A stretch of 63,864 nucleotides of DNA, counting the filler, from Cercozoa sp. M6MM (lineage: Eukaryota; Protista; Endomyxa: Ascetosporea), in assembly GCA_040357565.1 (NCBI GenBank). It is 9 parts of 9 records of this genome, joined end to end, with 100 filler letters (N's around TTAATTAATTAA, not from the genome) between each part and the next. Parts side by side here need not be neighbours in the genome. Positions count along the whole stretch, not along the records: positions 1 to 17,706 come from JBDODJ010000258.1; 8 more parts are not named here. One strand, written 5' to 3'. Under the pieces are notes generated by a model, which searched no databases, had not been told where the DNA came from, and saw only the letters and a program-made list of their open reading frames with translations. Made by a program: the position numbers and the translations under genes. This document shows, one piece after another, positions 14 through 15,516 of the stretch (position 1 is the first letter of the stretch; each line of letters begins with the position of its first letter).

Positions 14-1027
14 CTGCCGACGCTGTCGCTGCGTCTGTCGACATATGACACGGCCACGTTGGACGACATTGCCGACTACACGAGGCTGAGTGAAAAGGTA
101 CCCTCTCGACCCTGTCTGGTCACTCACTCAGTGGGAAGGCACCAGTGAGACACGTGTGTCTGTGTCTGTGTGTGTAGTTGGAATCGATCAGCAAGATCAA
201 TGAGACGCTGCTTGGCATGTGCACTGAGGTCGGTCTACTTACCCCTACCTTCCCCTACCTTTTACCCCTACCTTCTACCCCTTTATCCTCCTACCCCAGG
301 TCGAACTGGCCAACGGACGCTTCCGACGCGAGGTGCTCGGTCAGACCGACGGCGATGCCGACGGCGTGCCCGAACACGTGCGTCGCAAGCGCGTGCGTTT
401 CTTGTCTGGAGGGGAGGCTATACAGGGGCTATACAAAGGGGTGAAGCGAGGGGAGGGTAAAGTGCCGCTTGTGCAGGTGCTGTTCAGCAGTATCGACGAG
501 GATCTGCAACGCTGTCGTCGCGCGCAGCAGTCGCTCAATAGTCGCGTCACTCAGCTCCAGGGTAGAGACCCTTTACATCCCTACCCTTCTCCTGCCCTTT
601 ACCCTGCCCTTTACCCCCCTTTCCCCTTCCCCCTGCTCAGCCGACCAGCAGTACGTGCAGCGACTGGAGCGCGAAGTGAGCGATTTCGTCACGTCGCGTC
701 GCGCCGAGGCTGACTGTGAGTTTACCCCCCTCCCTCCCTTGACCCCTCATACCCGTCCTTGTAGCCCTGCGCGAGTACCTGCAGCAGCAGCAGCGGCAGC
801 ACCAGCAACACCAGCAGCAGTACCAGTCGCAGCAACCCTACGGAGGCGTGCCTGCATACGGCCAGCAAGCCAGTGCTCCGCCTTCCTCTGGTTACGGGAT
901 GCCTGGTGGCTACGGCATGCCATCCCAGCAACATCAGCAGCCGGGACAGCAACCGGGACAGCAGTACCCGCCGACCTCTGGTGGCTACAATCCGCCTCAT
1001 TATGGCAACCGTCCCTATGGCCAGTAG
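14..1027 (+). CDS. 3' part of ALIX/BRO1-like protein (end of V domain plus Gln/Pro/Gly/Tyr-rich tail), multi-exon, 5' truncated
   Basis: Hand-spliced GT-AG exons give ...YVQRLEREVSDFVTSRRAEADSLREYLQQQ followed by a Q/P/G/Y-rich tail ending TAG at 1025-1027. This resembles the ALIX V-domain end (SDIVFARKTERDELL) plus proline-rich region. Confidence 0.6.
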
Positions 1028-1351: not shown

Positions 1352-3203
1352 TTAGAACAGGCCAGTCATGGGCACGGCCTCGCCATCGCTCTCGCTTTCG
1401 CTTTCGGCGGCTTGCGCTTGCTAAACGGAAAAAGCAGAGCCACTGAATTGGTTCAAAAGCAGAGCCACTGAATTGGTTCGAGCCAAACTTAGACGCGATA
1501 GGTACCTGAAGTCTCAGTTGCTCAAGCTGCTTGCGTCGCTCGGCGACGGGATCACGCGGTTTGCCTGTTGGACATGAACAGCCAAATATTGATTCCCAGA
1601 TCACACGATCACACATATCGGCAAGAGACAGAAAACACACCGCCAACGGCAGGCTTCTTGCTCTTACGCTCGGCTGCTCTGCGTCGGAGTTCTACAGTCA
1701 GACAGCCAATCAAGTCAGTTCGGTCGACCAGTCAATCAGTAAGCCAGTCAGTCAGTGAGTCGCTCAAGTGAGCCAGTCAGATAAGACAGTTGGCTTAAGC
1801 GTGCATACCCTCATCGCGCTGCTTGTTGCGCAGCACGCGCTGCTCCTCTTCCGTGAGTGTCTGGCGCGGCGACACGCGGTACAGGTCAAGCACTTCTTCC
1901 TCTAGCTGGTGCGTGTGCGGGCCAACCTATACTTGTCCATTTTAGACGAGTCTGGCTGGTGTGCAGGCGTGCCCTACCAGAACAAGCGAGTGCAACGGCG
2001 CGCCAAAGTCAATCTCGCGCAGTTCCGCCAGTGTGCCCTGTATGTTAGCTTGCCTTCAGGCACTTAGACATTACTCCCCTCGCAAGACAAGGTACAGCGC
2101 AGATCATCTGGTCGTGCTGGCCGACACGAGCCAAACCGACGGCCATAGCGTCCGGACCGCAAACGCCTATCAGAGTGGCGTACATATAGTTAAGCTTAGC
2201 TGTTCAAAAACAGGCAGCAGCACATACCGTCACCACGTCTTTCTTCGATCATGATCATCAGGTCACAGGCCTGCTGAACCGTCATGTAGCGCGGAGGTTC
2301 GTAGATCGGCAGGCCCTTGGCCATGTTGATGACCGACTGCTCCTTGACCTGCAGACACATGTGCGTATATATGTTGACAGGTATATCTCTAAGAAGAGTT
2401 CACCTTGATGTCCAGAAGAGCAAGTGTGTGCAGACCAATATCACGGTTGTTGCGAATCTTGTCGTACCTGTCATAGACAATATGGCACATCCAGGTACAC
2501 TACAGTGGACGTGCATACCACGAATCGACTTGGGTGTGTTCGTCCCAGAAACACAATGTAATGGTTTGGCCAAAGTTGTACAACTGGAGACCTACACAAG
2601 ACACACGTCAAGAAGAACTGTCTGCCAAGAGCAAACTCGTGTATACCACAGGCGGCGCAGGCGTTCATGATGGAGGCGTTGTGGATGACCTTGACTTCGA
2701 CGCCCTTGTCACGCGCCGCACGCAGCAGAAAGTCCGTGTGTGTTGTGGCACTGACAAACGCACACACACATGAGTAGGCAGGTAGAGCACAAACTCCCAA
2801 GTCACCTGGGCTGTACCAGAAGGGATCGCCGACAACGAGGAAGGAGACAGAGCCCTCTTTGGCGGGATCAATGATCTGGTCCGAGAACTGCTCCACCATC
2901 TCTCTGTCCGCGACCTGTGACACATACATTCGCAACAAACACACGCACACGCATTGTCCCAGCGCCAAAAGAATCCATCGCACCGTAACGTCCTTGCCAT
3001 AGAAGGCCGACAGGCGGTCAACGCCACAGCTCAGAATCGCCGTGTATGCTTCCAGAAAAACCTAAATGCAACCAACATTCCTCATAGGCTACGCACATTG
3101 TTTCCGGAAACGATGGTACCTTGTCACTGGACTGAACGGCCTTGAGACCCTTGACGGTGATGTCCTCCTCGTCACCCAGACCGAGACCGATGATGTACAA
3201 CAT
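1352..3203 (-). CDS. DPH5: Diphthine methyl ester synthase with spliced C-terminal extension
   Basis: MLYIIGLGLGDEEDITVKGL, VFLEAYTAIL, VADREMVE, FLVVGDPF, ATTHTD, IHNASIMNA, LQLYNFGQT, GLHTLALLDIK, YEPPRYMT, DFGAPLHSLVL. Introns checked are GT-AG and phase-compatible through TAA at 1354-1352. Confidence 0.95.
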
Positions 3204-3582
3204 CTCAACTATACTAATGTGCTCAAGTGCGTGTTGATGTACAGCGCAATCCAACACACGAGTCAGCGCTTGTATCGCCTCTTTTGACTGCTTCCTCGCT
3301 GCTTGGCGCAAAATGCAGAATCTGTTAAGGGGGCGTCCTTCTTTCTTCGCACTTTTTTCAATTTCAATTTTTGACCTAAGCAAACTTCATCCATTAACAA
3401 TTTGAGTCATTTTATGTAGAGAAAATTTGGTAAAAGCTGGAAAATGTACTTGTTTCACATTCCTCTTTTATATATTTTTCGGGTTTTTCGATAATCCCCT
3501 GACCTGGGCTGACATCACACTTTTTCTCTCTGTGGGCTTCGCGACTCGCAGTTTGGCCTCACAGGGCATTCTCTTGGGGGTC

Positions 3583-6500
3583 ATGTCGATTCGCTACAAG
3601 TTTAAGGTCCGTTTAGCAGCTTGGGTTGGGTCGGTCCAAAATTTGTGTGTCGTTTTTTGTCTCCGTGTCGGTGTTTTGTTTGCGAATAGTGTTTTGCTTT
3701 TTTGGTGCTGTTTTTGCGCGCATTGGGTGTATGAATGGTTTAAATTGAATTTTGGGTGGCTTAGAGTGAGCAAGCTTGGTCGAACATCGAGTTTGACGCC
3801 TTGTCGATGCCGGTCGGTGAAGTAAAGCGCGCCATATTGTCGCAACGAGGTCTTGAGGGCGCCACCGACTTTGACTTAGCCTGTAACGAAGCGCGTACCG
3901 GCAGATCACTGGTAAACTTTTCCTCCTGCATTCACACTCCCTGCACTTTTCCGCTCCTCCCATTCTTCCATCCATCCCATCCCATCCCATCCCATCCCAT
4001 CCCATCAAACTCTACTCAACCCCACACCACCCAACCTCTTCCTGGGAGCGGAAGAAAGTGGACGCAGCTCGACTAGTTTTCGTGTGTCTCTTGAGTTACT
4101 GCTTGCCACAACCGCTGTGCGGCGCGTTTGTTTGAGCAATTGTGGCTGAGTGAGAAAGAAAGAGTTAGATGTCTCATCGTTATGTTATTCGTATCCGTAG
4201 CGTAAGGACGAGATGGTCGAACGCGGCTCGTCGCTCATCGTGGTGAGGCAGCCGGTGGCGGCTCAGACCATTTTCGGTGGTGTGGAGGAGCGCGTGGCTT
4301 CGGCGTCGTCGACGGCCAGTGGCGAAAGTACCGACGGTGGTGGCTACGACATGAGCGACATGGTGGATTTCTTCGCCAGCGAGCAGAATCACAACCCGTT
4401 CAGCAACGCTGCCACTGGTACTTTGCGCTTAGATATGTATATGTGTGGTGTATATCTGTATTTTTGTGTCAGGTGTTAGCACTGGTGGTGGCGGTTTTGG
4501 CGGCGCGCGCGGCCAGTCGGTGGCGTCGTACGCTCCGCCGCCGCGCTCGAACCGCGACCGCGCGTCACAGCCTTTGCCACCGGGCTATGTGTGCAAGATC
4601 TGCGGTCTGCCGGGCCATTGGATCTATGTGTGTCCGCGCAAGCACCTGGTACTCTGCCCGTCTTCTTGCTGCCCTTGGTTGTTGTATGTGTCTGTCTTGT
4701 TGTAGCCACGAAGCGAGCAGCGTGTCGGCCTGCCGAACGGCGGCCTGACGCACGGCGTGCTGCCCGTGGTGCCAGGCAAGGTGACCTCGAAGGCGCCGCA
4801 CACTGGCGTGTCGCCCACGGCCGCTGCCACGCTGCAGCCGCCGGCGCTGGCGTCGACTGGCCGCGCCGCGTCACTCAAGGCCAAGCAACAACAGAAACAG
4901 CGCGCCGACGCTGCTGCCAAGAGCGATACCGATCACGTGTCGTCGGCGCCGCCGAGTGACACGAGCGACGTCGACGCCGACCACGCGCGCACCAGCAGCA
5001 CCAGCAAGGTAATAATTAAAACTCTGCGACGCTTTACGCCGATTGCGACACGCCCTCCTGGCATCGCTCCTGATACCCCATATCCCCACTTTGGTTCCGC
5101 TCGTGATAAGCTGCGCACGAGCTCAAACAACTTGAAGCACAAAAGAAACAAGCTGGTGCTATCAGTATGTCTTGTGCCCGCTCGCTTCGGGTCGGACAGC
5201 TGTGAGCCACTCGCATTAAAAGTAACAATGGCAGTCGCAGAGTCCGCAGTTGGCATGGGCCAGACACAAAAAAGCCGAGTGCTGTTTTTTTTTGCATTTT
5301 TCTCGTTTTTTGCGGGGCCAGTTTGACCGGTTTTGTTTTTAACGGGATCTGGAAGCGCTAGCGCGTGTGAGTTTTGGTTTTGGGGGCGTTAGAGCGACTA
5401 GGAGGGTGTTTGGGTGTGAGTGTGTTTCAGATATTTTGAGGTTTTTTGTTTCTTGAGCAGTCAGTGCCTGAGGGTCTGAAATGCCCGCTCACCAAGAGAC
5501 TACTGGAAGAACCAGTTGTGGTGCCATGCTGCTTCAAGACGTTCTCACGTGTGCCGCTGATGCAACGCTTGGTACAACAACATTTGTTTGATACTTTCTA
5601 TTTGGGTATAACATGGGGTTTGTGTAGTGGAAGAATAAGAAAGACGGACACACGAAGGAAACGCTGGTGGGCTTGTGCCCGGCGTGCGGCAATGAGGTGC
5701 ACGCCGCTCAGCTGCGTGCTAATACAGTGGTGGCCAAACAATGCGCCGATTTCGAGTACCTTCCTTCCGGTTCTGTGTCGTTCTCTTCTTGTATTCCCTC
5801 TCTCCTAAAGGACCAGTCAAGCCAACAAGAACATTGGCGTTGCAGCTGCCTCCGCGTGGGGCGTTGAAAAGCCTGCTCCCAGCGAACCAGTTTCTTCCAA
5901 GTCTTCCAGATCGGTATTGTTTGTTACATGTGTTGTGTGTCTGTGTGTCTGTGTGTCTGTGTGTAATTTGTTTGTGCGTGCAGCGGCGACGGACGCCTTC
6001 GAGAGAGCGCAGCAGACGCAAGCGGTCTCGAAGCTCGGTACTTTGTTCTCTTCAACTGTTGCTTTCTTGTTATTTTGTTGTTTGCACTTAGCGACGCTCG
6101 AAGCGTGGCGTCACCGGCAACGTTTCTCTGAGTGACGTTATGAACTTTGCTCAACCTGGTACATACACCTTTTTCTGCTTCTATATAAGGGGAGGGTAAG
6201 ATATATAATATGTATTGTGGCACAGGCACTGTGGCACATCGCGTTTCCGGCGGTGAACGTCGCTCGCGTGGTACGTTGTGCAACCCGCTCTCGGTTAACC
6301 ATTCGCCCCTAACTATTGTGTCTGTGCAGACCGACGCTCGCACAGTCGGCAGCACCGCAGCAATCGTCGCAGTCGCAGTCGCGATCGCGATCGCCGAGAG
6401 CCTGCTCGTGAGCGCCGTGAACGTGACCGTGAGTCGCGACACCGCGAGAGCGAAACTCGACACCGCGAGAGCGAAACTCGACAACGCGAGAGCGAAACTC

Positions 6501-14147: not shown

Positions 14148-14373
14148 TCAGTCTGAGCTCGAGTCATGCTGCTGGCCGGCGGACAGAAAGCGCGTGCAGT
14201 GCGCACGCATCTGGTCAAAGGCGGCCAGTCGCAAGAGGCCATAACCGCGGTAGTCAAAGTCAATGGGCGAGAAGCGCGCCTGCACCAAGGCCCAGATCGA
14301 CCAGTGCAGATGCGAGGCCAGAATGAAGGGCTGCAGTTCCTTCACCAGGGTCTCGGCTTGCTCTAACAAAGAG

Positions 14374-14421
<48 letters not shown>

Positions 14422-14431
14422 NNNNNNNNNN

Positions 14432-14488
<57 letters not shown>

Positions 14489-15516
14489 ACACACACACAC
14501 AACTCCAGAGCCGTAACAGTCTGTGTCAAAGGGAGTTGATACCATCAGAGCATTCAGAGCCAAAGTAGTTTCGCGCAAACTGCAGTTGCGCCTCGTACGT
14601 GGGGAATTGCGACCTGCGTTTAAGAACAAAAGAGAAAGATCGCTTCCCTCTGTAAGAATCCACTCAAATAAACAGTAAAAACTAACCAGTCGCACTCGAA
14701 ACCGCAGCTCTCGCAGAAGAAGTTCGCAACATCGAAAGCACGCGCATTGATACCGCCGTACTCGAGGTCAATAAAGTTAACGCGGTCGCCTGCTCTCTGC
14801 CCAGAGAGAGACACCTCACATTAGTGAGTACCGTACACCCCAGTGGCAACACCAATGTGTACCAAGATGTTGCCGCTCAGGAGGTCGTTGTGCGCCAACA
14901 CAAGCGGCGAATTCACCGACGCACACATCTTCCTGTCAGTCGGGGGGGGGGGGGTAATCTCTGATTGTCAGGGGGGTGAACATACCGGGTATCCCGAAGT
15001 CGCTGAGCGATGGCAAGCGCATCGATTTCGGCATCAGATTCGACTTGCTTGAGCCACAATGTCATCGTGTCGAACACGTCTACACACACATCGTTGGAAC
15101 AGACCAGTCCCCTTGAACCCCCACCCCGACTTAGACTACCTCGGTGCTCGAGGCCCTGCGGCAGCGGGAGCGTGTGGAAGCGTCGCATGGCACGTGCCAC
15201 CAGAGGTGACACCTCGGCCGACATCATGTCCTCCGGCTTCAGAGGCGCTCCCTCAGTCCATGCCTCCAGTCGGCCACCTCCGAACAAACCCTGTTCAGAC
15301 GTGTATCATATATATATATATATATATATATGCCTCTCTGTACAGACATACCAGGATGGCCTTGCCAAAGCCATGTGCCGACAGGTACACTGACAGACGA
15401 AGCTCGCGCTCTCGGTCAATCACTCGGTGCGTGTCCGGGCCATACACTCGCAGTGCGCACTCCTGAAGTATATATACATACCTATCTCTATACACACATA
15501 TATATATAATATATAT

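Follow-up and report, generated by a model that had tools for sequence, protein, structure and literature searches.

The window analyzed here, a 63,864-nt stretch of DNA from Cercozoa sp. M6MM, carries a gene for diphthine synthase (DPH5) on its minus strand. The whole predicted coding span (positions 1352 to 3203) comprises 13 exons with 349 codons and a stop. Exons 1 to 5 of the model lie at 3203-3120, 3061-2984, 2914-2817, 2750-2647, and 2591-2519; exons 6 to 10 at 2467-2404, 2348-2228, 2166-2096, 2037-1978, and 1926-1809; and exons 11 to 13 at 1691-1641, 1564-1506, and 1420-1352. All of the introns begin with GT and end with AG, and the spliced model has 1050 nt, encodes 349 aa, and closes with a TAA stop at 1354-1352.

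The identity of the gene was examined with family profiles, local blastp, and motifs. In the profile searches, the open stretch in the exon 2-4 region that includes exons 3-4 matched TIGR00522 (dph5; E=1.4e-18), and exon 1 matched PF00590 at E=6.6e-7, exceeding the cut-off; the family profiles were run exon by exon, and single exons cannot attain whole-protein cut-offs. Local blastp showed that residues 1-271 of the model are colinear with the DPH5 proteins of Rhizopus, Lichtheimia, Saitoella, and Plasmodiophora, with 60-63% identity (for the catalytic domain, 60-63% to the fungal proteins and 61% to that of Plasmodiophora). The hallmark DPH5 motifs, read against the invariant positions of the alignment, are all in the translation: VVGDPF, ATTHTD, HNAS, GLQLYNFGQT, GLHTL..LLDIKVKEQ, YEPPRYM, and PLHSL. 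Judged from its translation, the gene is an ordinary diphthine synthase, and the catalytic domain is the part that it has in common with the DPH5 proteins of solved structure, those of Entamoeba histolytica (3i4t) and Pyrococcus horikoshii (1vce and 2z6r).

DPH5 carries out the SAM-dependent methylation of the ACP-histidine on domain IV of eEF2, and in dph1-4 mutants Dph5 is seen in association with eEF2. The gene for this substrate is present in the same genome (G000:C736), with its His loop (SLHTDAVHRGAGQIMP), and the catalytic domain encoded by exons 1-10 would perform the usual DPH5 methylation of eEF2. What sets the gene apart is a predicted extension of about 80 aa past the domain, encoded by three extra small predicted exons.

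Predicted 3' exons and introns of DPH5

Exon 10 (minus strand, 1809-1926) encodes the end of the domain (VGPHTHQLEEEVLDLY) and the start of a charged extension (RVSPRQTLTEEEQRVLRNKQRDE), which is contiguous with conserved residues. The conserved DPH5 end PLHSLVLVGPHTHQLEEEVLDLY falls within this exon, and so do about 20 residues (TEEEQRVLRNKQRDE) of the charged extension, independent of any splicing assumption. Downstream of exon 10, the sequence-only reading had placed three GT-AG introns at 1808-1692, 1640-1565, and 1505-1421, and our scripted assembly of the exons on the minus strand returned exactly these positions with the phase kept.

Predicted intron 10 (minus strand, 1692-1808; 117 nt) runs from GTATGCAC to CTGACTGTAG. 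If it is retained, the protein ends in NKQRDEGMHA, the same end (RDEGMHA followed by a stop) that had been given earlier for a transcript keeping the 1808 intron. Predicted exon 11 (minus strand, 1641-1691) encodes ELRRRAAERKSKKPAVGG and is followed by predicted intron 11 (minus strand, 1565-1640; 76 nt, GTGTGT...CAACAG), where read-through meets a stop after 13 codons (ORF 1609-1713). Predicted exon 12 (minus strand, 1506-1564) encodes KPRDPVAERRKQLEQLRLQ, and predicted intron 12 (minus strand, 1421-1505; 85 nt, GTACCT...CGTTTAG) would, if read through, give a long junk-like ORF reaching as far as 1161. Predicted exon 13 (minus strand, 1352-1420) encodes QAQAAESESESDGEAVPMTGLF and the TAA stop; because an in-frame TAG lies directly upstream, this exon is reachable by splicing only. 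The predicted product ends RDE, then ELRRRAAERKSKKPAVGG, KPRDPVAERRKQLEQLRLQ, and QAQAAESESESDGEAVPMTGLF, so that the addition of about 80 aa proposed past the usual Dph5 end is reproduced, as a prediction, by the spliced model of 349 aa.

The predicted tail has two parts of different composition. Its first 58 aa hold 18 K+R against 10 D+E and make up a net-basic, K/R/E-rich segment. This segment had been described as a charged helical linker. The last 22 aa contain five D+E and no K or R. Read from the sequence, they include an acidic Ser cluster, ESESESDGE (minus strand, 1379-1405), and end in a hydrophobic tip, VPMTGLF (minus strand, 1355-1375), in agreement with the acidic run and hydrophobic GLF end of the sequence-only reading. 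The CK2 site pattern is S-x-x-[DE], and all three Ser residues of the cluster fit it.

The tail could instead be an artifact of the gene model. The mRNA may end soon after exon 10, by retention of intron 10 or by polyadenylation (giving NKQRDEGMHA as the end), or may use other 3' splice sites, in which case the tail would be a path that happens to fit the frame, of the kind that can usually be found 3' of any gene. We consider this possible rather than probable. To measure how readily such a path arises, we shuffled the sequence that follows exon 10, with its dinucleotide counts preserved, 200 times. Of these shuffles, 48% permitted 59 or more further codons with no more than three GT[AG]..YAG introns, so the frame continuity and matching phases would arise by chance in about one case out of two. 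The real downstream sequence permits alternative chains as well, the longest with 172 codons. Further, at 117, 76, and 85 nt, the tail introns exceed the nine upstream introns (51-69 nt) in length, which also favors an artifact.

Other features of the region argue against an artifact. Two tail introns repeat the donor motifs of proven introns in the same gene: the octamer GTATGCAC is common to introns 10 and 5, and the hexamer GTACCT is common to introns 12 and 8. The acceptors are all YAG. Simple repeats are restricted to the predicted introns: intron 10 has TGACTG-like repeats, and in intron 12 a stretch of 25 nt is duplicated in tandem (about 1479-1430).

Codon scores bear on both sides of the question. 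The codon table was trained on the eEF2 and stalk genes of this genome only, and the null consisted of stop-free stretches of 19 codons from other parts of the window, which is conservative in that it includes real genes. Against this null, the three tail exons fell at the 86th to 88th percentile (exon 11 at the 87.5th and exon 12 at the 86th), with a combined P of about 0.024. All three exons are coding-like by this measure, which speaks against an artifact. For the bona fide DPH5 exons, in comparison, the median was the 98th percentile and the minimum the 63rd; the signal in the tail exons is thus weakly coding-like and lies below that of most true DPH5 exons, as an artifact would have it.

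DPH5 tails in other lineages

We compared the predicted tail with those in a sample of 320 full-length DPH5 proteins (four-digit P labels, such as P0098, denote DPH5 sequences). Across this sample, the extension past the domain had a median length of 13.5 aa; it reached at least 30 aa in 14% of the proteins and 60 aa or more in 7%. The long-tailed examples, which are metagenomic or transcriptomic (the P0098 and P0297 clades, P0129, P0237, P0420, P0475, P0027, and P0082), resemble the tail described here in the order of their elements, with a K/R/E stretch leading into an acidic Ser-rich run and a short hydrophobic motif. K/R/E-rich coils come straight after the domain in P0129, P0237, P0420, P0475, and P0082. 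Acidic Ser-rich ends are found in P0129 (SDSEESDSDSD at the C terminus), P0029 (DSESEEEEA), and the yeast-like P0026 (PPEDENLSD).

Two metagenomic clades each conserve a motif of their own while the remaining tail varies. The clade of P0098, P0275, P0280, and P0287 has EE(V/M)(P/T)M(T/Q/N)I.(A/P)L(I/V/M) and then an acidic Ser end, so that its hydrophobic motif, M-x-I-x-x-L-hydrophobic, sits within the acidic run. The clade of P0297, P0029, and P0379 has D(I/L)F(G/D/P)..P.GG..DSE.E. The tails of both clades are contiguous ORFs and therefore need no splicing assumption. In an AlphaFold2 model of P0098, the domain had a pLDDT around 90, and the tail, at 49-59, did not dock back on it; from these values the P0098 tail would behave as disordered. 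We also considered whether the tail motif docks on the catalytic domain of its own molecule; no such docking was seen in the P0098 model, where the tail is a low-confidence coil. The tail described here fits this informal class (charged segment, acidic Ser run, hydrophobic motif), for which disorder was modeled in P0098 only.

The tail ending ESDGEAVPMTGLF of this DPH5 resembles ESDVEEMPMTIVPL of P0098, and VPM(T/Q) in its tip is common to the metagenomic tails of P0098 and P0287. A profile hidden Markov model (HMM) of the P0098-clade tails gave exon 13 the top score (E=0.16) among the 654 six-frame segments into which the window was divided, a weak and partly post hoc match, since the clade was chosen for the HMM after the resemblance had been noticed. 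With the P0129 tail as the query, the three tail-exon frames ranked 4th, 6th, and 7th of 654, a similarity of composition only, and phmmer searches of the window with the tails of P0129, P0237, and P0082 gave no significant match. The two clades also differ from this DPH5 in layout: here the motif is at the extreme C terminus (GLF), whereas the P0098 and P0297 clades have it at an internal position, with another acidic run behind it. Their homology to this tail is weak, as the E value of 0.16 indicates, and they are not its closest kin in a quick tree.

In that tree, this DPH5 grouped with Plasmodiophora and a second sequence (P0157 and P0167) at an SH-aLRT of 94, with no starred support. Both of these neighbors stop right past the domain. 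Conservation of the tail in relatives, to which the sequence-only reading had looked for confirmation, was thus absent from the nearest DPH5 relatives in the sample, and the tail is therefore lineage specific or independently gained. A listing of sequencing runs contained no RNA run, and the assembly had no second allele of DPH5. No close relative was found in 90% protein clusters, searched with the exon 2-4 stretch, P0098, and P0167 (top identity, ∼63%), or among metagenome contigs (best identity, 64%).

For the gene model, the tail-less relatives are a further point in favor of an artifact. Set against them, the predicted peptide has an architecture that is found in contiguous, intron-free DPH5 ORFs of other lineages, and no segment of the window matches one such tail family better than exon 13 does. 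We grade the support for the 3' gene model as moderate and, from the sequence features described above, consider the modeled splicing of the three introns likely.

A tail that is real could still be neutral, that is, a low-complexity disordered extension that arose by gain of 3' exons or by drift and whose GLF end is a coincidence. DPH5 tails differ greatly from one another in both length and sequence, and many lineages have none; it follows that the tail is dispensable for catalysis. The archaeal and Entamoeba DPH5 structures are of a complete enzyme without a tail, the codon bias of the tail exons is weak, and the tail of P0098 is predicted to be disordered, all of which neutrality would accommodate. 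It would account less well for the short hydrophobic motifs that are kept within the acidic tails of two clades while their flanks vary, or for the recurrence of the three-part architecture across distant lineages. We regard a neutral tail as rather unlikely. The literature searched gave no function for a tail of DPH5, and this recurrent, lineage-variable class of tails is apparently undescribed there.

Comparison with the ribosomal stalk proteins

When PF00428 was searched over the whole genome, only three loci were found (L001-L003), the P0, P1, and P2 stalk genes. The three stalk proteins of this organism all end in EEEEEEEESEEEMGFGGLF (...EEEMGFGGLF) directly before the stop, without a final Asp, and their C-terminal peptide is EEESEEEMGFGGLF; the canonical stalk C terminus is EESEESDDDMGFGLFD, with a terminal Asp (PMC11624264). 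The terminal GLF is common to these stalk proteins and the DPH5 tail, with a spacing of F-G-G-L-F in the former versus M-T-G-L-F in the latter. It is important to note that this match at the tip is small and consists of three identical residues.

The spacing also invites comparison with archaea, where aP1 touches aEF-2 through G102, L103, L106, and F107, the contact residues forming L-x-x-L-F (PMC5887453); the M-T-G-L-F of the DPH5 tip agrees with this spacing. A second likeness to the stalk proteins uL10(P0), P1, and P2 is the succession of an acidic run with CK2-type Ser and a hydrophobic tip, and in the stalk, CK2 phosphorylates the SEESDDD motif (PMC11624264).

From these likenesses, one may propose that the acidic GLF tail imitates the organism's own Asp-less stalk tip and docks in the stalk-binding groove of the eEF2 G/G' region, tethering DPH5 to its substrate, so that the groove would serve as an exosite for substrate capture. 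An extended form of the proposal is that acidic and hydrophobic motifs in protist and fungal DPH5 tails are eEF2-docking motifs. We consider both forms improbable. The shared GLF end, with a hydrophobic residue preceding it in x-G-L-F spacing, the archaeal contact residues, and the CK2-type Ser in both tails all speak for stalk imitation. The Protein Data Bank copy that we searched contained no solved DPH5-eEF2 complex, which also leaves room for such docking.

Motifs in other DPH5 tails lend the proposal some further backing. Acidic residues together with LFG occur in P0027 (DGALQSLFGDL at the C terminus), P0293 (FQPLFGD), and P0297 (EADLFGN). An acidic-plus-LF motif, with G, D, or the end of the protein after LF, was present in the DPH5 tails of 2 of 31 clusters, whereas shuffles gave an expectation of 0.06 (P=0.002). 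This enrichment is no more than suggestive, as the motif was defined post hoc and the tail described here fails its acidic-count rule.

Direct comparisons, on the other hand, gave no significant similarity to the organism's own stalk tails. PF00428 had no match in the window, the DPH5 tail included, and an HMM of the own stalk tails placed exon 13 17th of the 654 six-frame segments of the window (E=49). A genome-wide search with the stalk tails at E<=10 recovered the three stalk genes only, and the DPH5 tail was absent from the results. Capture of the last exon from a stalk gene was considered and rejected, as neither protein nor DNA similarity extends beyond the GLF codons.

The composition of the tail also departs from that of the stalk. 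The last 22 residues include five acidic residues in the DPH5 tail versus about 15 in a stalk protein. Compared with the stalk C-terminal domain, the DPH5 tail is without the MGFG core, has fewer acidic residues, and has a Pro in its tip, and its GLF end is joined to an enzyme, whereas that of the stalk proteins is joined to the stalk dimerization domain. As far as sequence comparison goes, the DPH5 tail is not a recognizable copy of the ribosomal stalk C-terminal domain.

The other DPH5 proteins weigh against stalk imitation too. In the clades with the closest motif, the hydrophobic patch is internal and is followed by 10-14 acidic residues. Yeast-like and animal DPH5 proteins are without such a tip, and the nearest relatives are without a tail altogether. 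A co-fold of the 22-aa last exon with the G/G' exons of eEF2 (L007:2181-2729 and 2797-3456) gave an ipSAE of 0.01, which counts neither for nor against docking, from a tool that is uncalibrated for peptides of <30 residues. On eukaryotic eEF2, the site at which the stalk binds is a predicted one (PMC5887453, PMC11624264).

A possible role for the tail

On balance, we favor, by a modest degree of confidence, a tail that is probably real, disordered, and lineage specific and that belongs to the recurrent class described above, with a docking or regulatory role. The gene most likely encodes a C-terminal extension of about 80 residues that is intrinsically disordered. Along this extension, a net-basic segment of 58 residues would lead into the CK2-type acidic Ser cluster and then into VPMTGLF. 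Such a tail may act as a flexible docking or regulatory tether that carries a short linear motif. With such a tether, the enzyme would be locally enriched on a partner, for which eEF2 is the obvious candidate.

The current finding consists of a predicted gene model and a resemblance of three residues. If DPH5 tails are docking motifs, they would offer a means to study how the substrate is captured and released during diphthamide synthesis, and if the motifs dock on eEF2, they would explain how eEF2 is recognized by DPH5. Should the stalk mimicry that we consider improbable be true after all, this DPH5 would be a rare case of a modifying enzyme borrowing the peptide with which the ribosome recruits its factors.

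Repeats and neighbouring genes around DPH5

Two of the predicted introns in the tail model of the DPH5 gene contain repeats. Repeated TGACTG/CTGACTGG motifs occur in predicted intron 10 (window 1700-1790), and a 25-nt tandem duplication (GAACCAATTCAGTGGCTCTGCTTTT, two copies) lies on the minus strand inside predicted intron 12 (window 1430-1479). Convergent with the DPH5 3' end is the end of a Q/G/P/Y-rich ORF on the plus strand (window 848-1027; ...GYGMPGGYGMPSQQHQQPGQQ...YGQ, then stop); if the predicted tail model is right, only about 325 bp would separate the two stop codons.

In the product of a neighbouring plus-strand gene (window about 4200-5810), a zinc knuckle of the zf-CCHC_2 type (E=3e-8) precedes a U-box-like stretch whose match is weak (E=4e-3, below the Pfam cut-off), the same domain order as in RBBP6/Mpe1-type proteins. 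A choline/ethanolamine kinase gene has exons on the minus strand at about 14150-15290 (PF01633, E=1e-10 and 2e-9), and a (TG)n microsatellite masked with N's interrupts it. At about 11090 and about 14430 lie long (TG)n/(CA)n microsatellites whose cores are masked with N's.

Tandem DPH5 domains in crustaceans

Among the DPH5 proteins P0276-P0290 and P0001, the "Dph5" of decapod and other malacostracan crustaceans comprises two complete DPH5 domains in tandem, with a length of about 560-590 aa. In P0290, the second of these complete domains makes up the "tail".

eEF2 and the ribosomal stalk tip

The eEF2 gene of this genome (L007, G000:C736, about 2181-5053, plus strand) has at least five exons, and TG/CA repeats are common in its introns too. 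The usual eEF2 diphthamide loop is HRGGGQIIP; in contrast, the loop encoded here, SLHTDAVHRGAGQIMP, has an Ala within the run of Gly residues and a Met in place of Ile. The protein ends in DYYDKF.

The genome has three ribosomal stalk genes (L001, G000:C182; L002, G000:C64; L003, G000:C324), and each encodes the identical terminal peptide, EEEEEEEESEEEMGFGGLF, followed by the stop codon. As predicted from these genes, the stalk tip is unusual, because it has an extra Gly and lacks the terminal Asp of the canonical end, ...DDDMGFGLFD.
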